The notes under the pieces: model-generated
The model's input: the letters and a program-made list of their open reading frames with translations, nothing else
Told to the model about the DNA's origin: nothing
Databases searched by the model: none
Origin: Orbicella franksi
Taxonomy: Eukaryota
Length of the DNA stretch: 64,000 nt
Assembly (NCBI GenBank): GCA_964199315.1
Contig: OZ116700.1
Location: 4,154,001-4,218,000, forward strand
Reading direction: 5' to 3'
Program-made: the position numbers and the translations under genes
In this document: one piece after another, positions 1,813-64,000 of the stretch
Layout of the letters: every line of letters begins with the position of its first letter
Position numbering within the stretch: the first letter of the stretch is position 1

Positions 1813-4800
1813 CTGCGAGAAAACAAAAAAGAAACAATTGAACGTTTACCTTCCATATTATGGATTGTTGACCAAGCTTGGTAGATAATCAATATTAGTA
1901 CAATTTCCAGAGGTGAATATAAGAATTGGACATTCTGATTCGTCGAAAAACTCGGCTTATGACGCTTTATAGTGAATATAACATTTCCGAGCTTGGTTAC
2001 TAAGCTCACCACCTTTGGTATCTTGGCAAGTAAACATGGCGGACAGCTGCTGACTGAAATTTCTTATTTACTGGAAAGACATCACTCCAAGACCAGGATA
2101 TTTGATCGCCAGTAGGCATAGGCTACTTATTTTTAGACGATGATGACAACTGTAAATGAAGTCAACAACAATAAAACAAGGGTACCGGCTGGATTTAATT
2201 TTCGTAATGTTTCGCTTGTTCGTTTCCCTGTCGAACCCGATGTCTAAATTAATTCACAATCAATGTACACCTTAGCTTATTATTAAAACTACGGCTGCAT
2301 ACGTGTAAGGAAACGAGCAACTGCGTCTGTACTTTTATGTTTTGGTCCGTTATTTTGTAGTTCTTGATATTCACCTCTGAAAATTATACTAAAACAATTA
2401 TTCGCCGAAGGTGAAGTGAAGATTGGTGAATATTCACCAATTTTCACTGCGCCTAGGCGAATAATTGTTAAACACTAATGGCGGGTTATTGGTCACAGGA
2501 CAGAATTTGGTAGACCTTACCCGTTGGCAGAGCCAACCATGAAAAACTAGCTAGCTATTTCTAGGAAGCTTTGAGAATATCTCGGAGAGTAAAATATTGC
2601 AAAGAATTTATAAACGAATGAAGGCGTGAAGAAAATAACACAACAACAACAAAGCCTCTAAGGGGTAAACTACCTTCTTCCTCAAAGTGCTCTTGCTTGT
2701 GTAATAGATCCACGGAGATTTTACCGCTACTCAGGTTAATTTCGGACCGGTCGCCCTGAACGCTTGTTATGTAGAACTGAGCTTCGTCAATTCTGTTGCT
2801 CTTCAGGAGACGTAGTCGTAGGGAACGAACCTAAAGTGCAAAAACAAAAAGAAAGAAGTTATTTGCTCTAAGTGCTTTTATCAAACTCTCTTTTTGTTTA
2901 GTAAAATGAGTTTTGTTTACCTGTGTTTCTGGCAGTGTGAGAAGACTTGAAAGCTTCACATCACTTAGTTCCAAGCCAGCGACGTCTACGAACTTGTCCA
3001 TGACCATTGCAAAGGCCATTTCTAGGTAAGCAGATCCGGGCATCACAGTACCTCCTTGAATAAGGGCGTGATCCTTCAGAGTTGGAAAGCGGTGTAGGTC
3101 AATCTCGGTCTCCCAGCAATGCAGGCCTGATTTCAGGTCAGTCATCTTCACCTGTCCTAGAAATGGATGTGTTTGCTTGATGGTTTGCTCAGCTCCAATA
3201 GGCGAGATTATGGTTTCGGGTGGATGTTCCCTATACCAAAAGCTCTTCTCCATCCATGGATAGCTGAGCGAACGGACAAACTTAGCCGATGGATTTGGCT
3301 GTACGCAAGCCCAGTCTATGGGAAATCCCATTGTATACAATTTACATACTGTATTTTGAAGAAAACTCTTGTGCTGGTCTTGCACAGGTACCCTTTTGCG
3401 CGGGAGAGTTGCCACGACAACTGGCATTTCTTGATTTTTCAGATTGTTTTGAAGAGCAATCTGTTTGACGTAGTGGGCTAAAATAGGCTGCGTACTTATC
3501 TCAATAATCTGCTTGTAACCATCTTTCAGCAGATGCTTTACAGCTGGATTAAATTGGACTGGACAACGAATATTTCGCCACCAGTAGACGCCGTCAAACC
3601 GCTGACCCGAGATAACCTCACCCTCGACTGTAGAATACATAGGTATTTTCGCCAGTTGAGGGTTAACATTGATGTGCTTCATAGCTGCTTGAAAAAGCTT
3701 CTTAATGGGTTCCATGTGTGTGCTGTGAAATGCGCGTTTTGTTCCTAAAACTCGCCAGAAAGTGTCTCTTGCGTGAATCGCTAGATGTTGACCCAGTGCC
3801 TCGATTGATTGGGCTTCTCCAGACACTGTCACGCTCCTCGCGTCATTAACTGCGGCGACGTCAAGCGTGGCACTTAACTTAAGTTTTAGCAGTAATGTCC
3901 TGGCGTTTTCTTCAGACAAACCTAGAGCGGCCATACCGCCATTATTGGGGCATTTCTCTTGAAGAGTGGCGCGAGCCAGCACCAGTTGAACGGCTTCCCT
4001 AACCGTTATGATTCCAGCAACACAGGCAGCTGCAAACTCTCCAAGACTGTGACCGATGACGGCGGAAGGATGGATTTTCCAGGACATCAGCAACTGTGCA
4101 GTCGCGTATTGGATAGCAAAAGTGGCCGGCTGAGCGAAGAAATTCTCCGAAATCCTTGAAACGTCTTCTGGTGCAATTAACTCGTCCATGAGCGACCATG
4201 CCACACCCAGATCTTTAAGTAGGTTGGTCACCGTCAAAACAGCTTCTCTAAAAACAGCTTCACACTCAATTAACTGTCTTCCCATGGCATACCACTGAGA
4301 TCCCTGGCCACCAAACATGAAGACAAGTTTTCCACCATTGGAGGTCACTTCTGCGTATGAAACTAACTTATCCCATCCCATGGAGTCATCAGAGTAGTCT
4401 GCAAGAGACTTGGATGCTTCCGCAGTGGATCCAAAGGCAAGTGCTAAGCGGTGTGGAAGTTGGCTGCGGCGTTCGTTTAAAGAGTAGCATAAGTTTTCCA
4501 CAAAAGTCTTATCCATAGCTTCGATGTTAATTCTAATCCATTCGGAGTAGAGTCCTGCCATCTTCTGTAGAGCTTCTTTTGAACGCGCTGACAGGGTGAG
4601 AATATTGTTTGCACGTTCAGTGATTTCTTCCTCTAAACCTTGTTTGGGTGTAACTTCACGAAGCAGCAGGTGTACATTTGAACCACCAAAACCAAAGGCG
4701 TTTACGGCTGCTATTCGTGGTTTTCCTCTTGTTTCTAGCCAGGGCTCACTGGTTTGTTGTACAACAAGCTCTTTTTCTTCCAGCTTTAGTTTAGGATTAA

Positions 4801-22227: not shown

Positions 22228-24857
22228 ATTTTTTGGCGGAGACGAGCGACAGCCGGAAATACGTCTGCGTTCGCAGGCTAGTATGTGTGCCGAGAGTTGT
22301 TCAAAAGAGTGCTTCTACAAACCTTTCAAGAGGACTCTACATGACTAAACCGGCTTCGAGGAAAACAATGGTCAGTAATACAAAGAACATCGAAGTATGT
22401 GTCCGTCACGCTCGACACAGATGAGAAATGTATAAATGTACCTTGTATACAAACCTACATCTGGAAGGGAAAGCTAGCAGTTTTTAATGCTACCTAGGTT
22501 TCAAAGATCGCTACAAAGGACCAAAACTTTAATCTTGAAGCCAGGTAAGATTTACGTGAATTTATCGGAGCACTTTACGAAGGCGAGTATGTTACCTACT
22601 CAGTGGAATATTTTCAGAATTTCCTGAACTTTAAGCTGTCGTTAGTTTTGAAAACCTAGTGGGCAGACAAATTTTATTATTTTTTTAAATTAAGGGCCAT
22701 TTATACTTTCTATTCATGTAGTTCAGCAGTTTCAAACAGGTGCCACACTTTTAGAACGTGACTTCAAAGTAGAGCTAGTTTCGTGTTTGGTTCAAAACTC
22801 GATTTAACGGTTAGAAAATCTTCTTTTAACCGTTGAAGAAACAACATTGAATTATAATTGCAACATGGCTAAACAAACTGCTATGATGTATCTATAGTTG
22901 AATAAAAGAATTGGGACTTTTGAGCGAATATCAATTTTTTAGAGCGCCGGCAATATGTGCCATTTTTCCAGTTTCGGCAGGCACGCAATTTGTGTCGAGT
23001 GGACCGAACTTCAATCAATCCTAGAAAAATTCAATTAGAATTTTTTATCAAATAAAACTCATTTTAGTGATTCACTAGGTAAGGGCTTCGAAATCCCAGC
23101 TTATGAGAAAAATCGAATTTTAAAAGTAAAATCAGTGCTCGGTTTTTACAGAGACAGCCTCTTAAATCTTTCGATATATGGCTTTGAACATACCAGTAAA
23201 TCGATCAATAAAATTAAATTCTCGGTTACTACTTGCACGTAAGGTGAACGGAAAACGCGCGGCCACGTTCAAACATTACAGGAGCGTATCTGAGGAGTGA
23301 AGTTTGCCTTTTTGGTGTATGCGTTCCATCACGAAATGTTTGGTGCTAATTACACCTGATCGTATTTTCTCAGTACGCTTTCGCGGCATATCAGGAGAGT
23401 TTGGTCCAACCATGGCTCGTATTTTTGCGAGATGGAGTCGAGCCGAAATACTAAAGACGAGAGCCATCAGGCCGGATATACTGCCGAAGCGTACCAGAAA
23501 GACACAATTAAGTATTTACCATATCCAAGTTCGCCCCAAAGTTTGGCTATGTCAGGTTAGCAACTTGATATCACAGCACAGTAGATAGAGCTTCTTATTG
23601 GCTAATAGCTAATTTTAGGTGTATAAATGCAGTTATTTAAATGCAGTACGTGTTTGCATATTCCAACGAGTCTTTGGGCAAACATGACCCAGCTAGATAC
23701 AGGTTTCATAAAAGACACCTTGATATGCATAAATTTCTTGACGGAAAAAAAAAATTAACAACTCTGCAGTATGTCGAGTTTCGCAAGAATGGCTTTATTA
23801 AAGATAATGAAACCGCTAAGTCCCTTAAAAGTCGCATAACTCTATAAAAGTGATCCCCAATAAAGTAAATTTAATCAACAAAAAATCAACAACACGCAAC
23901 CAGGAACGGATTAGTCTAAATATAGTTAACCATATTATAACTTGCTTACAAACGGGTAAAGTGGTTTGGTCCCGCGAATTCTCAATTCTCAATCATTATT
24001 AGAAATACGAATTAATTTTCTGGACAACTGATGCACACTTCTATTCAGGTCTGTTTTAAGAATCTGCTAATATGTCAAGACAGTGTTTCCTGGAATGAGC
24101 AGAATTACCGTCACTGTTTAGTAAAGAGACAATTTTTGTTCCTAAATGATGAATAGAAAAAGTCGAGTGAGTCATCAAAATTCAAAGGAGAAAAAACTAG
24201 ATATAACACCCAGTTCAAGGGAACAGGCATTAAAGACTCTGTCCCATAGCGTGTGTTCACACATACTATGCGAAACTAAAAAACTACAATGTTCCAAGAA
24301 GTAAACTATGCTAAAACTCGGCGAAAATCTGTTCGAAAATTAAGGGCCACAAAAAAGGTAACTAAAATAGTGTGGAGGGCGAGACAACAGTGACCCGTAG
24401 AAACTCATGCTAATATACAACTAGTTTGAAAGTAAGCGTTTCCTTAAAGTTATAAAGTGGAGAGGAATCAAACATTCTTATCTAGCGCTGACTTTGGATA
24501 AACTAACATAATTGGTGGATGTGAAGCAATCTATACTGATCCATTATTTTCGTCAAAGTAAATTAGGTCTCTATATTTACGAATGACAGCGATTTCACAG
24601 CAATTTTACGTAGACTTTTAGTTTCTGGGTAAAAGAACTAAGTTGTGTCTGAAAGGTGAAATCTAAACTTACCTAGCTACAATCACTTACTTCTTAAAGC
24701 TACAGAAAGCGAGTTCCTTTTTGTTAAAAATTAGACCATAAAAAAACTACAGGCAAATTTCTTGCAAAAATAGTCAAATGTCACAGAAACAGACTGGTGA
24801 AAATGGCTGCTTTCGATATAACAAAGAAAACCTGCAAGTTGTAATTAATCACGCACG

Positions 24858-24863
24858 TTTATT
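24858..24863 (-). promoter_or_regulatory. Candidate polyadenylation signal of PKS-B
   Basis: AATAAA on the minus strand ~280 nt after the stop. The hexamer is common in AT-rich DNA. Confidence 0.25.
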
Positions 24864-25139
24864 AATTAATTGTAAATAAGTTTATACTTGGGTAAGAAAA
24901 GGCTACTTGCTAAGCTTTTGCAACTAACAGTGAAATCTAACAGAAGCATCGGGGTAAATCGCTCCATGGCTCTGTCATTTTGACTGAATAACAAGGATCA
25001 GTAAAGTTGCAACTAAGCAAGTTTGTTGTAAATATATTTCATGACAGGCTTGTGTCAAAAAGTACGAACTGAATTCGAACAACAAATGGTCAAAATGTTA
25101 TAGCTAGAAAAATTAACACACGTGTTTGCCACTACAATT

Positions 25140-25360
25140 CTAACTGGTTAACAAAGTCACAGCAAATACAGCTTCTATCATGTTGTAAAATGCTTTTAGA
25201 TCGGAATAATCAGTGAATTCCAAGTTGTAAACTCGTCGGCCTGTTATGACGGATGCAACTTGTCCCAGGTTCCCACTTTGATGAGCTCCAACTCTTCGCT
25301 TGCGCCAGGCATACTTCTGGGCACTGGAGACAAGTCGTCCTGGCTGCACCATGCGGAGGC
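25140..25360 (-). CDS. PKS-B terminal exon, PH-like part 2 (GLRMVQPGR...[13 protein letters not shown]...IEAVF...*)
   Basis: Strong acceptor tcttttctttcag|GC, phase 1, ends at TAG 25140. Confidence 0.75.
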
Positions 25361-28300
25361 CTGAAAGAAAAGATTCTTGTGAGAAAATGCTTTCTAAAAG
25401 AGGTAACTTATCGATATATAAACAAATCTGAAGACACCCTGTTTGAAAACAGCACGTACATGTACTTAAAGAAGACGTAATTGACGGGCGTTTTGCACAG
25501 GCCGGGTTATGTAAACACGAGTTAGTGGTATGTTTGGATTTTAGTGTTGGATTTATTTTGGCATATCTTTATTTATGCTGGCCGTTCTTGTCTGCAAAGT
25601 CTCGTGAATTGACATTTTTCCAATCGATCATTGCATCAAGCTATGTGAACATGCGCTATTTTATATTCAGTCTTGAAATAGAGTTCATAAGGGAAAAGCA
25701 AGGGGGAAAAAGATCAAAAACATTACGTAAAATTGAACAGACCGTTGCTTAGCATAAATAACAGCTTTACTTGTTTTGTTACCTTCCAGGTCAATTATCT
25801 TTTTGGTTTTCTCATTCTCCTCTGTTCCTCCTTCCTCAATTATTGACCTCAATTCAAGTTTGTGAGCATCCTCGGTGAAGAAAAGTTCTCCAAAGTGTGG
25901 CCATTTGTTGCCTAAAATGGAAGGGGGTTAAATGTGTAATAAATAACACAGGATCAATAAATATATGCTATCTGCGATTTTCAAAGGCTGAAATAATCGT
26001 AGAAAACGTTCTCTTTGTTTAAGGATTTATATACTTATGAAAAACAGGGTTGAAAGAGAGATGAAAAACCTCATAGTCTTTTTGCACTTTAAATTGTCGA
26101 ACTGAAAAGAGCATTGCTCGACGATCCAAATATGGCAGTAAGTATATACCACATGTTCCAACAAGAAAGATGGAAACATTTGAGTTACACTGGTAAACGT
26201 GACCCTCACGTTCCTAAATCTGTCGATAATACAACCCACATCCATTTCTAGTGCAATACTGTAGGAGTTTCTTTAAGGTGGCCGAACACAGTTTTCGCGC
26301 GCGCTTTTGCTGATGCAATTCAGCGCGCGCACAAGGATTGAAAAACAAACATTGTTTCAATAGAGCGATCATTTTATTTACTCAACACCCGCACAAAATG
26401 CGCTATTTTTCTCCATTATTGAACGCAGTGTATTGATGCCTTTAGTCTTTTATTACAAAGCTATGTTAGAAAAGGTAACGACGCAAAGAACCCAGCAATT
26501 CTCAGCTTTTTCTTTGTTACCGAAAGAACCCAGTTAAATGCAGCGCATGCGCAGTTGCTCGAAAAATTGAGACCGATTACTTTTGCAGAAACTTGCCGAT
26601 TTCTAACGATCCAGTTGTTAGAATTTCAAGAAATTTGGCAAAATAATAATTCAGAAACCACGTAAATGATCTATCGCAAAAAATCTGAATTTTGACATAA
26701 GGAATTTTTAATAATACAGAACATGCAGTGAAAACGATTTACGGCGAATTACGAAAGTCGCCTACGTCAAAATTTTATTAGAACAGTGTTGACAGAAGGG
26801 ATTTAATGTCAATTCATAGTGGGCAAATGATGAAAAAAATCCAACGACTGAATTTTTTTAAATAAACAAAAACCATTTTTTAAGCCGTGTTTTCAACCAG
26901 CCCCGTTGCCATGGCAACAGCACTCACCTTAGCCAAAATGTGAGAATACACCCTTCTGTGGTTAACCTTGACTCTTACAAAAAACGGGCGCCAAAGCATA
27001 AATAGCTTTAAAATAATGGTGAATTAGGCAGAGGCTCTTGAAAACTGTGTTCGGCCACCTTAACTTAGGTTGCCCTCGGTGTGTAAAAATTCAGTGCATC
27101 TTCATTTAAGTCCCTCTCAAATGATACGAGGGAATTTTTGGAAGTGGAGTAAAAACCATCAGCTAACTGACGCTGTCGCAGCAAATTACCTTTCTTTGAG
27201 TGAAGGAATACTTTTACTCCGCTGCAAAACTTTTCCACGGCTCGTCTTTGATGGAATGTTCTTGTAAGTCTGGGGAATTCGGGGAACAACATCCGGTAGT
27301 TGAATGCGAGTGCTGATGCTAGGATACTGCCTGTCACGTGAGCATGGGGTAACTCACTCAAGGAGTAATGGTCGCCAGGGCAAACGAGCATGGTTGTGCC
27401 TCCATCTACCAGCTGGCCCCATACTTCCTCAGCGCCATATACCGAAGAAATCTCGCCCATGAAGCGGTCGCTTTGGGCTTTGAGGTAGGTGAGAGCACCA
27501 CGATAGCGGACCTAAAGATCGAAAGAAGAGGTTACGTATGATTTGACATGCTACCCGTCCAAGAAATGCTATTTCTACCATATGGTTAGCTCAGTTGGTA
27601 GAGCGCTAGCGCCAGACTGCTGTGCGGAAGGTCGAGGGTTCGAATTCCAGACCGGACCAAAACTCAGGGTCTTAAATAACTGACGAGAATGTGCTACCTT
27701 TGTAATTACATCTGCAAATTGATAGACATTCAAGTCTTCTCGGATAAGGACTATAAACTGAAGGCCACGTCTCCTGCCTCTTAAGCGTTACGTGGTTAGC
27801 AGGGGACGTTAAAGAACCCACGCACTTATCGCAAAGAGTAAGTCACGGAGTTCCCGGTGTTGTGGTCTGGCCTTTTCTCACGGGTTGGTGCTTCACATAG
27901 GGTTAGCCGCATTGCGTCTTTTCCCCGTGGACAGAATTGTCCAAGAAAAATGGTTACGTCTATGTCTTACACTGTTGGAAGTTCTGCGTCAAGGCGTTAA
28001 TTGGATTAGTTGTTCCTTACACGACTCCGTTATATTGGGTTGAATCAATACAAATCAATTGTCCCATACCTCAGCAGGCTGCCATTCTTTGAATGTTCTA
28101 AAAGAAACGATCTGGTTTTTTAGAAGAGCTTCCCTGAGTGCCCTCAAATTGTAGTTAGCGAAACCCTTCTCAACGCTTCGTCTCTGCAGTTCATCTATGA
28201 CCCAGTCTTGAGTGTGCATCTCCCTCAAGGTTTTGAATTCGTCAGCCTCCATCTTTAAAGAATCTACGGCCAGTTTTGTCAGAAAGTTCTCAAAAGAAAG

Positions 28301-31300
28301 CTGTCAGGAAAACAACAAATCTATTAATTTTTATTTGCTCATCGATTATTGGCATATATGCAAACATTTTTATTAACCTTAAACAATAGGAAATAGCGCT
28401 AGCTTACTGGATGACGTGGTGAATGTATATAAGACACATGTGAACTGCGGTTGATACATAAAACGAAAAGGTTTGGTGGATTCGAAACACCGGCGCGTTG
28501 CTCTACCCAACTGAGGTACGAAGCGTTGATAATGCGCACAAGGTAACAAGGCTTCACAGCTCAGTTGCTACCCGGAAGTACGCGCCGGTATTGCAGGGAT
28601 CATGGGTTCCGTAACCTTCAGACGGTACCTATGAACTTTCTTACCATTTATGTATAACCATACAACTATTTTTCTCTTTTTTATTCTAACGCATTATTAC
28701 CAGCAACCTAAGAGGAAGTGTTCAATTTTGTTACTCAGTTGGATTTTGTTCTTCGATAAGTTAGTTTCCCTTACAGGATAATATTGAATTAGCCAGGTAA
28801 TCACTATCTTAGTTTTGCTATGAGCACTTTCCCACGAACCTGAACCTGTCGACGTTGAAATTGTTGATCAGCAACCATGGAAACCAGTCTATTGCTGACA
28901 GTCCGCGAGCGCGGATACCAAGGAAATGTGTCAATCATGGCTACAAACTCCACCCTCTGGTTCTGCTCTGTCAACAACGACGCCATTTCGTAGGCAACAA
29001 GCCCCCCGTAGGAATATCCGCCAAGAAAGTACGGTCCATGACGCTGCTCCTCGCTGATCAGTTGAACGTAATGTGCAGCAAGTTCACGGACTCCACCCCA
29101 GTCCTTACTCACTGCTGTTGGGTCAGTATAGCCCAGTGCATAGAAGGATACCAAATCCTAATATGGGGTAAGGAAAAATGTCCATTTAACAAATTTACGT
29201 CAGTTTTTCATGCGTCTGTCCTGTTATTGATCATGAATTTCGCATTAACATTGTTAAAATAGCTGTGGATCCACGACGCGATAGCCGACTGGATCCGCAG
29301 GCTACTTTGACAATATTATGACGAAATTCATTGTCAATAACAGGGCAGACGATTGAAAAACTGATGTCAATTTGTTTTTTACAATAAAAAATTCGTCAAA
29401 TTGTCCGCTCTCGCTCGTCGCGTCAACATCTCATAAATTATAAATTCACGAGTCGTCCTTCTTATCCACAATGAAAAATAGCCAATGAGCACGCGCGAAT
29501 TTCTGCAGTTATTGTAAAAATTACACTCACACACATAAAACAAGCGGCCCCATGCCCCACTGGGGGCAATGAGTATTGGTGATGACACATAAAACAAATA
29601 GCTGAACGTGACACTGTCGGGTTAACTGAAATCACCCTTTGGCCAATTTCTTCCAAAGTGTAGTCCACTTTGCACCAAATCATTTTTATTGGCTGCTTTC
29701 AGGTAGCTAAAACGTGTATCACATGTGGGCCAATTGCAATTCGTTATTTGAAGAGCCGATGAGTGCAGCGTTTGCCTGGCAAGTTACAATGGTATAAAAC
29801 TAACCTTCACTGTCAGTCAACATACCTCACTTAGAAGTGGCTGTTAGGGTTAATACCCTTTTAAATACTTAAGAATTGATTAAATAAGGTTGCACACCAT
29901 GTACGTCATTCGAGTGTTAAAACGAACGTTTTATTGGTAGACCGAGTATTGAGTGGAAAAAATGGAACAGGAAGCTGGCGCTTTTCTTGTGCGGAAACAA
30001 AGTACAATGTACAAGAGCCAACTACGTAGGGGGTATCGCTGCTTTCGGTATATACGAGATGTAGGGAGACAAGTAGAAGTAGAATGATGAATATGAGACT
30101 TAAATAACGTCAATACATATTAGCTGGGAGTCACCTGGCCTTCAAATCCCGTAGAAATCGCTGCCAGATTTAACGCATAATGGTGTGACGGATGTACACA
30201 GAAGAACTTGATAGCTGCGCCCGCAGGAGTGTACAGCGGTACAACTTGAATCTGACTCTCTGACATGACAGCAGATGGGGATGCGTCGGTCAGCGCAGGC
30301 TGTGTTTGCGCAGGCTCATTTTCTAGGTTGACGTTATTTTGAAGTTGTTCACCAGGTGCTTCTCCGCCAAGCTTGGCCATGACGTCTTTTGCAATTTTAA
30401 GTACGGTCGTATCAGGCTGCATAAAGTAGAAAATCTGAAACAAGAGCACCGTTTGTATCTCGTCAATTTGTGCAAAAAAGGTTAGTACGAAAATTCCGAA
30501 GGTGAATTGGAAGTGGTTATTCTGCTAATGGCAACTCAGATAGGTAAACCCGAGAACTGAAGTCCTCCTTAAACCAATCAACTGGTAAGTTGATATATTT
30601 TCCCACGCCTCACTGATCATATAGCGGAAATATAGACATTAATCATCCAGTGAGTGTTATTGCAACACACCTCAAAAGAAAATTGCAAATTGGCTTCAAA
30701 CTGCATTTTCAAGGTCAGTGCCCCAGCTGAGTCGAGACCATAGTTGTACAAGCTCTTGTTGAGATCTACCTCAGAACCCGAAGGCATTCCTGCCCATTTA
30801 GTCATTAGTACGCCTACGTATTCCATGACCAGTTCGCGTCTTTTTTCTTCATCTTTCTCTAGCGTGATGTTTTGCGCCAGGGAATCTGACGAATGCGTCT
30901 GAATGTCAGAATCCTTAATTTCAGCTTTGATCAGCGACATTCTGGGCGTCTTCTTTAGCCCGACAAGACTTCTCATGCAGCGAGGCCAGTCCACACCACA
31001 CAGGGTAATTTGAAAGCGGCTCGGTTCCTCAGTAAGAACTTTGGCCATGTGTTTGACTCCTGTGTAAATATTTCAGAATTTAGAAGGTACAACTTTAATA
31101 TAACGTATACGGTTTGAACACCAAACTAGAAGTCCTTGTAGTGGGATTGAGTGAAAGTATTCTTGAGAAAGACGTACGCTCCGACAACCCGAGTAATAAT
31201 AGCCATCTTGAAAATAAGAAAAAGAATGGTGACTTAGTCTGAATACGACTGCCTTTCTTACTATCGTTCATGTTATGAAAATGCCAGACTTTGAGAACAG

Positions 31301-59200: not shown

Positions 59201-62200
59201 TTAAATTAGCCAGCAGGTAATACAAAATATCGTTGTTTCAAATCATGGCTTCGACGCTTTTTCGAAATTGTTGAATTATTACTAGCCTGCAGGACAGGCA
59301 GATTAGCGGGGCAGAGAGCGAAACGCGATACACGAGCGTGGAGCGCGACCACGAGCGCGAAGCGCGAGACGGAAAAAAAACTCGTGCTTCGCGCTCGTGT
59401 ATCGCGTTTCGCTCTCTGCCCCACAAATCCGCCTGTTCTGCAGGCTAAATTATTACCAATCACAGAAATGTTGAGATGATATTAAGTTGAAGTCATTACC
59501 TGTTGAACCCACCAGAAAGGGGCCAAATTCCTAACATGCGAATTTAACAAAAAAACAGTATAATTAGAAATTGCAGCGCTACATGAAAGTGTTGCTAAAT
59601 CACTTTTACTTCAGTAGCCAAGACTTATGTTTTATTTACGCTCTTAAATTGTTTGAACATCCTTGCACAGCTTGATAGATAGTTCCACATGGAGGCTTGT
59701 TCACTAGGATTTCATCAACATCTTCATGTTCAGGCAGTTCACTTTAGACAGAGCAATAGCAGTACCACATGAAAGTACTGTTATAAATCTTCCATGTAAA
59801 GGCCTGACACTAAGTTTAATCCACAAACTCGCAAGTTGAAACCACCTTGTACAGCATAAAAGTGCTAATAAATAGTAAATAGTTTCAGTAAAGTACTAAA
59901 GTACTGCTTAATAGAAACAGTATAGTAAAGGACGCCACAAAATAGTACTCTGTAGCAATCAACTGCATGTCGGCCACACATTTAGGTCTTAGTCACAGGT
60001 TTTACTGGGATCGATAAGGTTTAAGGCTTCATTCGCATATTTATTTGTAGTTGATGACAAATCCAGTAGGCGTTTTCTGATATTAGTATTATTTTTGAAA
60101 TTGCAGTTGCTGCTTTCCACGCCAATTTAATCCATGTCGCCTGTGGTCGTCGTTCTGTAGCTGGTATTTGCGTCTTGTGGAGCGCTTCTTCGCTTGGTAT
60201 GGTGGAGGAATTGCAAAGCATCCACTGATAACAATCCAAATATGTATCGTATTTGTCAGTGTCTGTTCCGTGGGATTCATTTGGTTCCAAACAGAAAACA
60301 GAACTGTAAATCTGTTCATCCCTCAAACCAGCCAGGCATTAGATGACTTAGACACAGCCGAAAAATACTTCCGAGTGAAAATTCGAGAGGAAATCGTCAT
60401 GTTGGAGGCATCCTCTGATCGTGCCAATGTTCTTGATCCTGAGTGTCTCAAGCAGGCCTTCAGGGTCCACAACGCAGTTATGGAAGTGGAATCTTATCTC
60501 GAATTCTGCGTCACGCTGTCAGGGAACAAATCCAAATCACAAGACGATTGCATGATGGTCAGCCCGCTGGAATTTGTGCAGTTCAATGAAAGTAAGCTAG
60601 ACGGTAAAAACCTAAATGAGATTCGACAGGACCTAGACAAAGCGTTAAGCGGCACTGCTCTCATGCGCAATGGACGTCCCTTCCGGTTCAGCTTCAACCG
60701 CATGTTTGGCAGTGTCAAACGAGAGCGTGGAAACATAGCCAGCGCTAAAGCATTACAGATGGTGTATTCCATGCGTGACCCAAGTGACGAAGACGAGAAC
60801 GAAAAAGTTCTGAAATGGGAGAAGAATTTCATCGACAAAATGGCATCGTTAGAGGACGAACTCTCTTGCTTCAAAGTCCACTACTCAAGTGAGAGAAGCC
60901 TGGACGATGCTATTGCCGAAAGCAGCGGATCTGACATTACACTGGTTTCAATCACTTTCACTCTCATGATCAGCTTTGCTAGTTTCATGCTTGGAAAGTT
61001 CTTGAATCCGCTGACCGGTCACTCCTTGCTCGCTAACGCAGGAGTGTTTGCAGTGGCCCTGGGTATTCTAGCTGGGTTTGGTGTCGCCATGTGGTTTCGG
61101 GTACCATTCGTCAGTATCGTTGGAGTCTTGCCGTTCTTGGTTCTGGGAATCGGCATCGATGACATGTTTATCATGGTGGATGAGCTTGATCGACAGCCAC
61201 GTGAAATGACAATGATCCAAACTATTAAAACCGTTATGAAGCATGCAGGAGCAACTGTTACCATGACGACAATGACAGATTTGGTGGCGTTTGCAGTTAG
61301 CACTTCTACATCATTTCCAGCGATAAAGTAAGACAATAAATTTGTTGTTTGATTAAATCGCTTTTGTTATTTGTCCAAATAAATCGATTGCTTTTATCGG
61401 CGAAACAAAATATCAACATTCAATTCTCCTAATCATTTTCCATACATTTCCTCTAAAGTAGTTGGGACAATTTGTTTAATCAATCAATGTCAAGGTATCT
61501 TCTCCTCGGTACATAACAGTTTCTCTCGTGGCTGTTTGCAAATAATAAACAGAAAAATTTCACTGGCCTTGACAAGGTGTGGGATATCCCACACAAAAAT
61601 GTGAACCGTTCTAAAATCTAAAATGAACACATGGTACAAGACATGGCACACAAAAAACGCAAAAGTCATGTGTAATGCTCGTTTGTGGATGCGTTACCCC
61701 AAAATCTTAAAGTTAATCAGAGGTACAGTTTCATCGAGTTTTATAATTAACTTTGAATGAACACTTCCTTCAATTTAGGTATTTCTGTATCTACGCTGCG
61801 CTGACAGTGACCTTCTCCTTCCTTATGATTGTCACATACTTCGTGGCCATTATGTCATTTGACGTGAAGAGAATAAAGTCAGGCCGCAGAGATTGCTTAC
61901 CATTCTGCCTTGCGCCTCGGCCGAAAGAGGGAGGGCCAGAATGGGATGAACCTGTTCCACAGACGTCAAATCGGGCCATGAAGTTGTGGGGTACATTGTT
62001 GACAAACCCAGTAACAAAAGTTGTGGTTATATTCTTGTCGCTGGCGTTGCTTAGTGCTGGGATATACGGGGTCACCCAAGTGGATGAATCGTTTGACAGA
62101 CGAATCCTGGCAAAAGATGATTCTTACTTGAGACGATTTTTGTCCGCGGAAGAAAAGCATTTTGTGCTGTCCATCCAAGTGAGCATCGTGGAGAGTGGTG

Positions 62201-64000
62201 AAGTAGATTATGAGCAGGACCCCATCCAGAAACAGATCAGAGAGCTGACAAACATTATCACAGAAAATAAACATTACCTTAACCGATCCCTCTCCTGGAT
62301 AGACATATTTTCCCAGTATGCCAAAAGCTCTGGGAAAAACATCACCGGTCAAGGCTTTTTACCTGAATTGAAAGCATTCCTCAGCATTCCCGATTATGCT
62401 TATTTCAATCAAGACTTGAAGTTCTCCGAGGATGGCAACAAACTGGTAGCTTCTCGCGTCCTGGGTTTCATGAAGAATGACGGCAGCTCCACCTTCCAGA
62501 AAAACGCCATGCTCACTCTCCGAGATGACATCGCAGAAAAAACCGAACTCGATGCCTTCCCAATTACTCGATTTTTTATTTTCTTTGAACAGTACGCTAT
62601 AACATCAAGGGAAACCTTAAGGAACCTGATAATTGCGGGCATAGCGGTACTAGTCGTCACAAGTCCCTTCTTGGTGGACTGTACCGTAACGTTCATCGTG
62701 GTCCTCAACTTTGCAGCCCTGATATGTGAGTTGTTTGGACTGATGGTTATCTGGAATGTGTCCCTTAACTCCGTGTCCATGATCAACCTTGTAATGGCTA
62801 TTGGGTTCGCAGTCGATTACAGCGCGCACATTGCACATGCTTACATAACGTCAAGCATGGTTACAGCCAATGACCGAGTAGTGGATGCATTGAGCACACT
62901 GGGAGCGAGTGTCTTCATGGGAGGTAAGTGCGATGGTGTGTGGATTAAGTATTGAAATGTTAGTGAGTATAACCGGCAAATAAATCAGAATTTTAACAGA
63001 AAGGGCTTGCACCAGAATATAAACAACCAACACACAGAAAACACCGGGGGTTCTTACTTTTGCACCCCTTACTACGTTCAGAAACTAGTAACATCAATGG
63101 AGAACTTTAAGCTATGAACAAGTTTTTTCTCTTTTTACGATCGGTTTCTGTGGCTTGCCTTTTGAATGGTATTTCTTCAAAGGCTACCTTCTGCGGGTTT
63201 TGTCAAATGTCCTAACCAATTTCTCGGTGCATATTCAGTTGTGCAGCTCTGGGTCGATTGAATGATTCAGAGTAAGCATATTGTGTATTTCGGCAAAATC
63301 AAGAGCCAGGAGGGATGAACATATCTCGAAATCAGTTAAAATATCTCAAAGAAGTTTCTTTGATTGCTGAACATCTGGATAGCCCAAAGAATTACAAACA
63401 AAGCATAGCTTTCTTCTTTTTATTAATAGTTAGCCTGGTTTAGTGAAGGGAACTAAAGCATACCGTGGTAACCTTCTTGTGTCATTTTGCTTAAGGTATC
63501 AACGTGTCTGTCTTCTTCTTTTTGCTTGTTTTCAGGATTCAGTACGTTCCTTGGCATGGTCGTTCTGGCGTTCGCCTCTTCGGAGATCTTCCGAATATTC
63601 TTCCGAATGTTCTTTGGAATTGTAGTGCTTGGCCTTCTTCACGGCCTGTGTATTATGCCAGTTCACCTGTCGTTCCTGTGCTGGAGACCCGCTATCGCCC
63701 GACCCCCCTCGGTAGGAGACAGTACTGAGAAACGGAACAGCACTGGCAAGAAAGATCGACACAGCAAAGCAGCTGACAGAAGCCTCCGGATGGTACCAAT
63801 TGGAAGTGAAGACACTGAAGATTTCACTGAAGTATTCAGTAAGCGAAGCAACGATGATCATACCCGCCAGAAAGACGGAGCAGACGGCGCTCAGCAGGGA
63901 GTGACTAGTGATAATGTCAAGTTAGGAATTCAGAACAAGGGAATTGAACTTGATGAAGAGCTCAAGGAGGCAAAAGAAGGTGACAAGAAAAAGGAAAACT
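56163..64000 (+). CDS. Patched-domain-containing protein (PTCHD3/NPC1-like RND/SSD family), spliced, 3' end beyond window
   Basis: Exons (56163-56248 or 58356-58432), 60107-61327, 61779-62923, 63536->64000. Canonical LPFLVLGIGIDDMFIM, FPAIK|YFC, MAIGFAVDYSAHI and GLLHGL motifs. Confidence 0.92.
57050..57745. mobile_element. Internally deleted ISL2EU-type (PHIS) transposon with convergent THAP-transposase and SWIM/YqaJ-gene 5' remnants
   Basis: Plus strand: PDP..LKGW...WPDLTSGDLYTYLIETPGIYTKESLKSFKSLEA...SQRINDQPH. Minus strand: MPVSYCVINCTNR...F[fs]RF...KRTAWINAVRRKDWTPS (THAP). Inverted gtggttggcaaaa motif near both ends; ends approximate. Confidence 0.65.
58356..58432 (+). CDS. Candidate alternative first exon 1b of the Patched-domain gene (MASRNEEIICCASDEITTTNNQNLK)
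   Basis: ATG...AG|gtacct phase-2 donor; several differences from exon 1a are synonymous. Confidence 0.6.
59283..59447. mobile_element. Mutator-like MITE (TAGCCTGC ends, 9-bp TSD) in the first intron of the Patched-domain gene
   Basis: ~55-bp TIRs; exact TSD aattattac at 59274-59282 and 59448-59456. Confidence 0.85.
60107..61327 (+). CDS. Patched-domain gene exon: TM1, luminal loop 1, SSD TM2-5
   Basis: ORF-track start 60168 is TTG; the frame is open back to the acceptor at 60107 (an alternative phase-2 acceptor exists at 60161); donor AA|gtaaga. Confidence 0.88.
61779..62923 (+). CDS. Patched-domain gene exon: TM6-TM11
   Basis: tttag|G TAT TTC; donor GGAG|gtaagt. Confidence 0.92.
63536..64000 (+). 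CDS. Patched-domain gene exon: TM11 end, TM12, charged cytosolic tail (open at window end)
   Basis: ttttcag|GA; GFSTFLGMVVLAFASSEIFRIFFRMFFGIVVLGLLHGLCIMP. Missed by the ORF track because no stop lies in the window. Confidence 0.92.

Follow-up and report, generated by a model that had tools for sequence, protein, structure and literature searches.

The minus strand of a 64,000-nucleotide window of the ~497-Mb, intron-bearing Orbicella franksi genome (NCBI GenBank assembly GCA_964199315.1, contig OZ116700.1, here C3:4154001-4218000) carries two large paralogous type I polyketide synthase (PKS) genes, PKS-A and PKS-B. Our analysis indicates that PKS-B continues past its thioesterase (TE) through two small spliced exons (here exon 2 and exon 3), and structure modelling supports a pleckstrin homology (PH) fold for the last ~125 residues of the protein, with a flavour of the phospholipase C (PLC) and Num1 PH domains. 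The tail is an unusual add-on for a membrane-anchored polyketide synthase, with a putative role in lipid binding, and it represents a divergent, anthozoan-restricted PH-like sequence family that is new to Pfam and sits in a novel PKS architecture. We read the two exons as constitutive coding exons of PKS-B and consider it fairly probable that the PH-like module acts as a peripheral membrane-binding or targeting module of the TE end.

In PKS-B, a giant exon (41526-35899) encodes a sterol-sensing/Patched-like domain (SSD), followed by the ketosynthase (KS), the acyltransferase (AT) and the start of the dehydratase (DH). Later exons encode the rest of the DH, an enoylreductase (ER)-like region, the ketoreductase (KR), the acyl carrier protein (ACP) and the TE by Pfam, giving the order SSD/Patched-like membrane domain, KS, AT, DH, ER-like, KR, ACP, TE. 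A tblastn search with the full-length Oculina patagonica model (P0170, 3574 aa) resolved the gene into 12 collinear blocks running from 41697 down to 25143, the last two of which are the two small 3′ exons. The TE is recognizable as an alpha/beta-hydrolase with GxSxG and GDH His motifs by its match to PF00975 (1.9e-16 on exon 28804-29154, and 7.8e-21 for the thioesterase of P0170), and the GYSYG and PGDHYS motifs are legible directly in the TE translations.

The last TE exon ends in ...AAAGAAAG/GTAATT at 27190/27189. Exon 2 is flanked by ...ttttag/ on the acceptor side and /GTAACA on the donor side, and exon 3 is preceded by ...tttcag/; the donors are of the G/GTAA type and both small exons have polypyrimidine-AG acceptors. 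The donor at 27189 and the exons 25911-25783 and 25360-25140 had been proposed in the original prediction, made from the letters of the window, and they are correct to the base in their splice sites and open frame. The unspliced frame from the last TE exon hits a stop at 27067-27065, where the prediction had placed the read-through stop (27065), and the three spliced pieces give an open 206-aa C-terminus. For the end of the protein, the predicted stop coordinate stands, but the predicted last residues '...EAVF' do not, as the protein runs seven residues further (AVTLLTS).

The public runs that contain the window sequence come from coral holobiont libraries. Splicing of this extension was followed in a polyA RNA library of the coral holobiont, kept as contigs (X1), and in two raw-read runs (X21 and X23). 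Both joints that the prediction had offered for checking, 27190/25911 and 25783/25360, are present in X1 contigs. One joint skips exactly 25912-27189 (2 contigs, depth 535) and the other skips 25361-25782 (CT..AC on the plus strand, i.e. GT..AG on the minus strand; depth 7413), both having GT..AG ends on the gene strand, and the latter is also found in one raw read of X23. Three further contigs pass from 25913, at the exon 2 start, to the last 17 bases of the TE exon in reverse complement. An unspliced contig over the exon 3 acceptor has a depth of 43 versus 7413 for the joint, or about 170:1 in favour of spliced RNA for intron 2. Across the gene end, X1 contigs reach a depth of 34,000-110,000 in the TE exons and in exons 2 and 3, the two small exons being as deep as the TE exons, and of 43-131 in intron bins; this 100-1000-fold contrast provides an internal control against DNA carry-over. 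Variant joints with one different letter match PKS-A-type sequence, which argues that the paralogs are spliced alike. Because at least one paralog has the same sequence at the junction flanks, what the reads prove is splicing within the family, not in PKS-B alone. The raw-read runs add little: X21 has only 19 reads over the gene region, and X23 contains mostly the intronic transposon and exon 3 at 95-99% identity, with the single junction read. The summed contig depth of the PKS exons in X1 (window 24300-29300) reaches tens of thousands, which suggests that in this sample the PKS paralogs count among the host's strongly expressed genes, these depths being sums over paralogs and not a proper expression measure.

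The genome itself offers an independent view of the two exons. Peptides of exon 2 and exon 3 each match five C3 loci, and exon 3 also matches one C12 locus at 35% identity; at four of the C3 loci and at the C12 locus, the exon pair lies downstream of collinear PKS/TE exons. A search starting from the TE exon recovered five TE exons of the SSD-PKS family, with the exon pair behind 5/5, including PKS-A, whose 3′ end had been named in the prediction as a place to look for the same exons. Splice sites and phases of the pair are conserved across six loci and exon sizes are the same, the C12 paralog again having exactly 42 full codons in exon 2 with the same split codons. Intron lengths vary across the copies, at 1278/572/779/735 nt for intron 1 and 422/435/454/222/152 nt for intron 2. 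For exon 3, DNA identity among paralogs is 83-98% versus 47-76% for intron 2, pN is 0.006-0.027 versus a pS of 0.08-0.23 (combined dN/dS 0.08-0.26), and protein identity among four paralogs is 97-99% versus 80-92% for the TE exons. Conserved sites and phases, variable introns, low dN/dS and the presence of the pair behind every TE of the family place this arrangement far beyond chance. With GT-AG introns, RNA junctions and a frame under purifying selection, these are genuine exons.

The five SSD-PKS genes are located at C3:3.40 Mb, 4.11 Mb, 4.15 Mb (PKS-A) and 4.18 Mb (PKS-B) and at C12:22.58-22.593 Mb (L012-L014, L016, L019, L006). Three of them form a ~75-kb tandem array that includes the window, and one lies 0.7 Mb off; the C12 copy is divergent, at about 50% identity, and the terminal exon structure is common to all five. 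An orphan copy of exons 2 and 3 lies at C3:4222422-4223046 (L015), about 4.5 kb past the right end of the window, with 64-86% protein identity, intact splice sites and an intron of 152 nt. No PKS or TE exon was found within 17 kb upstream of it. This orphan pair looks like a partial duplicate, or else it may have been recruited by another gene.

The extension is also found well beyond Orbicella. Searches with exon 3 only returned no spliced product: its profile, run against 1.84 billion protein representatives, gave 23 matches, nearly all short open reading frames (ORFs), those inspected being genomic ORFs on coral contigs running in from the intron, and 28 matches came from a word search made with the frame that is open around exon 3, those inspected being intron read-throughs. 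Using the C-terminal region of the Stylophora model P0140 as query led to full-length NCBI models from Oculina, Stylophora, Desmophyllum, Actinia tenebrosa and Nematostella vectensis, and seven NCBI models, representing all five anthozoan species, terminate in the same domain. The last 150 residues of P0170 match the spliced C-terminus of PKS-B at 129/150 positions, and many coral assemblies contain homologues of the PKS at 55-91% identity. Because the extension is present in the models of both groups, it is at least as old as the split between corals and sea anemones, and the PH-like tail was already joined to the TE before that split. The domain had been called hidden in the original prediction. 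This is correct for prokaryote-style ORF calls and some models such as P0140, which miss it, but not for the NCBI models of five other anthozoans, which already contain it without annotating it as a domain. The P0140 model (Stylophora pistillata LOC111328543, 2955 aa) breaks off within the thioesterase, without the last TE exons or the PH-like tail, both of which are included in a second Stylophora model (P0172). A practical rule for annotation is that a coral PKS model which comes to an end within the TE or shortly behind it is truncated; P0140 and ORF-style calls are examples.

The fold was modelled with AlphaFold2 on residues 3425-3574 of P0170, the 86% identical Oculina ortholog, and the alignment (A3) comprised seven full C-termini together with exon fragments from paralogs and metagenomic relatives. 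The model has a pLDDT of 85.1 and a pTM of 0.81, and four of five models agreed. In this ortholog, a seven-stranded antiparallel beta-sandwich (strands 26-31, 40-47, 52-57, 71-75, 79-84, 112-117 and 121-126) is closed at one end by a C-terminal alpha-helix (129-143), as in a PH-like fold, with an additional N-terminal helix (13-24) and a short helix (89-94) plus small hairpin in the beta5-beta6 region. Mapped onto the gene, the N-terminal helix and strand beta1 (model helix 13-24 and strand 26-31) come from the final ~35 codons of the last TE exon (about 27190-27295). Exon 2 codes for the end of the beta1-beta2 loop, beta2, beta3, the acidic beta3-beta4 loop and beta4, and exon 3 for beta5, the basic/aromatic beta5-beta6 insert, beta6, beta7 and the C-terminal helix.

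Structure comparisons converge on the PH superfold that the prediction had inferred, with AlphaFold and Foldseek among the checks it named. The top 50 Foldseek matches in the PDB are all of this superfold (ISP1 best at E 2e-5, also PLC-gamma, ELMO1, SBF1 and PLC-delta1), and VIA-align, which is independent of Foldseek, agrees with all 50 rows of PH type (PLC-gamma1 Z 13.1; PLC-delta1 Z 13.0, with 116/119 residues aligned at an rmsd of 3.3; ISP1 12.2; PLC-epsilon 11.9). Among Swiss-Prot models, the Num1 homologues ApsA and Mcp5 are on top, followed by the N-terminal PH domains of PLC-gamma and PLC-eta. The ESM Atlas shape search points to Mcp5_PH, PI-PLC and ELMO clusters, the AFDB clusters retrieved are PH proteins with no PKS, and the named top matches by language-model features all belong to the PH clan, at values below the trust level of the tool. 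The nearest structures are therefore those of PLC (gamma, delta, epsilon, eta and beta) together with ApsA and Mcp5, which bears out the PLC-delta/Num1-type flavour that had been proposed. Sequence identity between the tail and PH structures is 9-16%. Pfam gave no PH-clan match even at E<=10 for five orthologous C-termini and none for the window exons, so that the gathering thresholds of PH (PF00169) and Mcp5_PH (PF12814) are not reached, and the best PDB-sequence profile match, the SBF1 PH domain at E 0.48, is non-significant. Here, the fold is known and the sequence family is new, a PH-like family missed by Pfam.

Comparison with characterized PH domains shows what the tail has in common with them and where it departs. 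With the N-terminal PH domains of PLC-delta1 and PLC-gamma1 (PDB 1mai, 9qb7; Z 13.0-13.1, rmsd 3.0-3.3 over 116-121 residues) it has a sandwich of seven strands and a C-terminal helix in common, as well as an additional helix at the N-terminus and a helical element within the beta5-beta6 loop, and each is attached to a lipid-handling enzyme. Unlike these domains, the tail has only 12% identity to them and no Pfam PH match, is placed at the C-terminus of a PKS and not the N-terminus of a phospholipase, does not conserve the beta2 Arg residues or the beta3-beta4 ligands of the inositol trisphosphate (IP3) pocket, and has Phe in place of the helix Trp. The Num1-type PH domains (A. nidulans ApsA, S. 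pombe Mcp5; PF12814), which are the top Swiss-Prot model matches at E 5.8e-6 and 1.6e-5, are likewise C-terminal PH domains on very large proteins. However, their hosts are coiled-coil dynein anchors and not enzymes, there is no sequence-profile match, and their specificity for phosphatidylinositol 4,5-bisphosphate (PI(4,5)P2) is not inferable for the PKS tail. Toxoplasma ISP1 and ISP3 (PDB 4chm, 4chj) have the best Foldseek E-values (2e-5 to 4e-5) and form the top language-model cluster (ISP3_C), and they are, like the tail, divergent PH folds without standard sequence signatures. In contrast to the tail, the ISPs are small stand-alone proteins that are anchored by acylation and make protein contacts. 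Their identity to the tail is 13-15%, and there is no sign of common descent.

Lipid-specific PH domains carry a K-Xn-(K/R)-X-R signature across beta1-beta2 and also use the beta3-beta4 loop, and classical PH domains have an invariant Trp in the C-terminal helix. In some PH domains, the beta1-beta2 and beta5-beta6 loops flank an 'atypical' lipid site. In the PKS tail, a Lys-Lys/Arg-Gly motif at the end of beta1 is conserved, and in every ortholog from coral to Nematostella the beta1-beta2 loop carries a net charge of +2 to +4 and the beta5-beta6 insert one of +3 to +7; the basic stretch of the insert includes aromatics (W, Y). Peripheral membrane contact through these conserved basic beta1-beta2 and beta5-beta6 segments is plausible. 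The helix Trp is absent: across the family, from corals to Nematostella, nearly every member has Phe there; the prediction had already read the Trp as replaced, and the replacement is a conserved Phe. A canonical, stereospecific phosphoinositide pocket is not expected, and the phosphoinositide-type membrane contact that formed part of the prediction can only be inferred.

The tail of the last TE exon and exons 2 and 3 together encode a ~140-residue module with an N-terminal helix, a seven-stranded PH-type sandwich bearing a short helix and the basic/aromatic insert in its beta5-beta6 loop, and a C-terminal capping helix. In the mechanism that we favour, this module would keep the product-releasing TE end pressed to the bilayer that houses the N-terminal SSD. 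The conserved electropositive beta1-beta2 loop and the beta5-beta6 insert would make the contact, by electrostatic or atypical-site binding to anionic lipid. We favour membrane contact because the basic loops with their aromatics are conserved and because the enzyme is already membrane-embedded via its SSD. If the PH tail does bind membrane, both ends of the assembly line would be pinned to the bilayer, which would offer a concrete, testable model of the way in which a lipid-like polyketide is made and exported by an animal.

Several observations weigh against this proposal. PH domains that bind lipid specifically are a minority, and the K-Xn-(K/R)-X-R signature is incomplete in the tail, where beta2 starts with K-W-P-H in the window and K-(K/H/M)-P-H in other corals; the last signature position is His in corals and Lys only in sea anemones. 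The beta3-beta4 loop lies in a low-confidence part of the model (pLDDT 54) and is not conserved: corals have it acidic (-1 to -3) and Actinia basic (+4). Several of the closest structures (ISP1/3, ELMO1 and the PLC-beta/gamma PH domains) act by protein contacts. Finally, the fold model was built on an 86%-identical ortholog and not on the peptide of PKS-B itself, and the junction-spanning contigs are not assignable to PKS-B over a near-identical paralog.

The main rival reading gives the PH fold no part in lipid binding and has it dock onto protein instead, either within the synthase or on another molecule. Candidate partners are the TE or the ACP, the SSD on its cytosolic side, the other subunit of the PKS dimer, or a separate protein, for example the Patched/NPC1-like one encoded nearby. 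We regard this reading as possible but rather unlikely. It draws on the best Foldseek matches being ISP1 and ISP3 and on the closeness of the ELMO1, PLC-beta and PLC-gamma PH domains, which are known for protein contacts (PMC7327484 for ISP1 and for the PLC-gamma1 PH domain with tubulin). The incomplete phosphoinositide signature and the acidic beta3-beta4 loop point the same way, and the extreme conservation of exon 3 (97-99% versus 80-92% for TE exons) fits a tightly co-evolving protein interface. Against it, conserved Lys/Arg clusters with aromatics in loops are typical of membrane-facing surfaces.

A bolder version of the membrane proposal, which we consider quite doubtful, is a self-contained 'make-and-hand-over' machine in which the PH tail would clamp the TE onto the bilayer beside the Patched-like domain of the enzyme itself and the hydrophobic polyketide would be released straight into that conduit, an architecture that the coral-associated alveolate Chromera would have in common, with the PH tail, by ancient common origin or gene transfer. 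SSD/AcrB-like-PKS fusions have been described in Chromera velia as Cvel_8275 and Cvel_22311 (PMC7464705). Like PKS-B, the Chromera velia fusion (P0176, 4523 aa) has an N-terminal Patched/SSD and a single PKS module ending in a TE, but its ACP-TE region is only 26% identical to that of PKS-B. Comparison of its ~300-residue post-TE extension (~4224-4523) with the PH-like tail gave an hhalign probability of 2.3% and an Atlas value of 0.78, and the single-sequence AlphaFold2 model has a pLDDT of 34.6. By eye, the strand/helix pattern of this extension is like that of the coral tail, and the extension stays a candidate PH fold.

It is also improbable that the tail is a high-affinity PI(4,5)P2-type sensor, like the PH domains of PLC-delta1 or Num1, that directs the synthase to a membrane defined by its phosphoinositides, the plasma membrane for instance. 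By Z-score and E-value, PLC-delta1, PLC-gamma1 and Num1-type PH domains are indeed the nearest folds, down to the extra N-terminal helix and a beta5-beta6 loop helix, and beta1 ends in a conserved Lys-Lys/Arg-Gly. Against this, K-W-P-H stands where the signature has its beta2 arginines, the beta3-beta4 loop that supplies ligands in PLC-delta1 is acidic and variable, and Pfam PH/Mcp5_PH profiles have no match at E 10, with 9-16% identity to PH structures. Lastly, the exons have almost no chance of standing outside the functional protein, as rarely used alternative exons or a fossil duplicated segment: the orphan pair at C3:4222422-4223046 does show the segment copied alone, and gene coverage in X21 and X23 is almost nil, but this reading is contradicted by an exon depth equal to that of the TE exons, by the spliced to unspliced ratio of about 170:1 at intron 2, and by purifying selection, conserved phases and full-length orthologous models out to sea anemones.

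To our knowledge, as far as literature searches reach, type I PKS and fatty acid synthases (FAS) are treated as soluble megasynthases ending in a TE or a reductase, and our literature search found no paper on a PH domain after a PKS thioesterase. The genes analysed here belong to an apparently highly expressed, tandemly amplified anthozoan PKS family with a Patched/sterol-sensing membrane domain at one end and a predicted PH-fold domain at the other. PKS-B is a member of the anthozoan SSD-fused type I PKS, present at NCBI as 'mycocerosic acid synthase-like' models (P0170-P0175), and these deposited models contain the post-TE PH-like domain, which is neither described nor named. The architecture given for Acropora digitifera, 'other-KS-AT-DH-KR-ACP-TE', stops at the TE (PMC4604110).

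Table 1. Features at the 3′ end of PKS-B, in window coordinates, with the support for each.
Feature	Position	Strand	Support
TE exon with GxSxG nucleophile motif (GYSYG)	28867..29157	-	Pfam PF00975 1.9e-16; collinear with P0170 residues 3169-3265
Last TE exon, with GDH catalytic-His motif and last TE helix	27190..27511 (upstream boundary approximate)	-	tblastn of P0170 residues 3352-3460; end 27190 set by RNA joint
Intron 1, phase 1, GT..AG, 1278 nt	25912..27189	-	RNA joint skips exactly these bases; donor G/GTAA and acceptor AG/G kept in four paralogs
MITE-like transposon in intron 1, 791 bp, perfect 24-nt terminal inverted repeats beginning TTAA	26273..27063	.	Repeat search
Exon 2, 129 nt, 42 full codons plus split codons	25783..25911	-	RNA joints on both sides; 5 paralog loci; depth bin 109,689 in X1
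Intron 2, phase 1, GT..AG, 422 nt	25361..25782	-	RNA joint of depth 7413 in X1 and one raw X23 read
Exon 3, coding part, 72 codons plus stop TAG at 25142-25140	25140..25360	-	Sequence, RNA, paralog conservation
3′ untranslated region, at least this far	24300..25139	-	X1 contig depth 2,200-9,650 across 24300-25134 versus 43-131 in introns

Intron 1 of PKS-B is longer than in the paralogs (1278 nt versus 572-779 nt) because of the insertion of an element resembling a miniature inverted-repeat transposable element (MITE). This element (26273-27063) directly adjoins the codon at which read-through stops. RNA reads that derive from other, diverged copies end exactly at 26271-26273 and 27063, and since they end at the borders of the element, the MITE-like family is transcribed elsewhere.

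A stand-alone Patched/NPC1-like gene adjoins the PKS cluster on the plus strand (window 60168-62955), with Pfam matches to Patched SSD (1e-24), Sterol-sensing (2e-20) and the NPC1 middle luminal domain (3e-8). Its product is 22-25% identical to the N-terminal membrane domain of the PKS, and the fused SSD may derive from this gene or be related to it.

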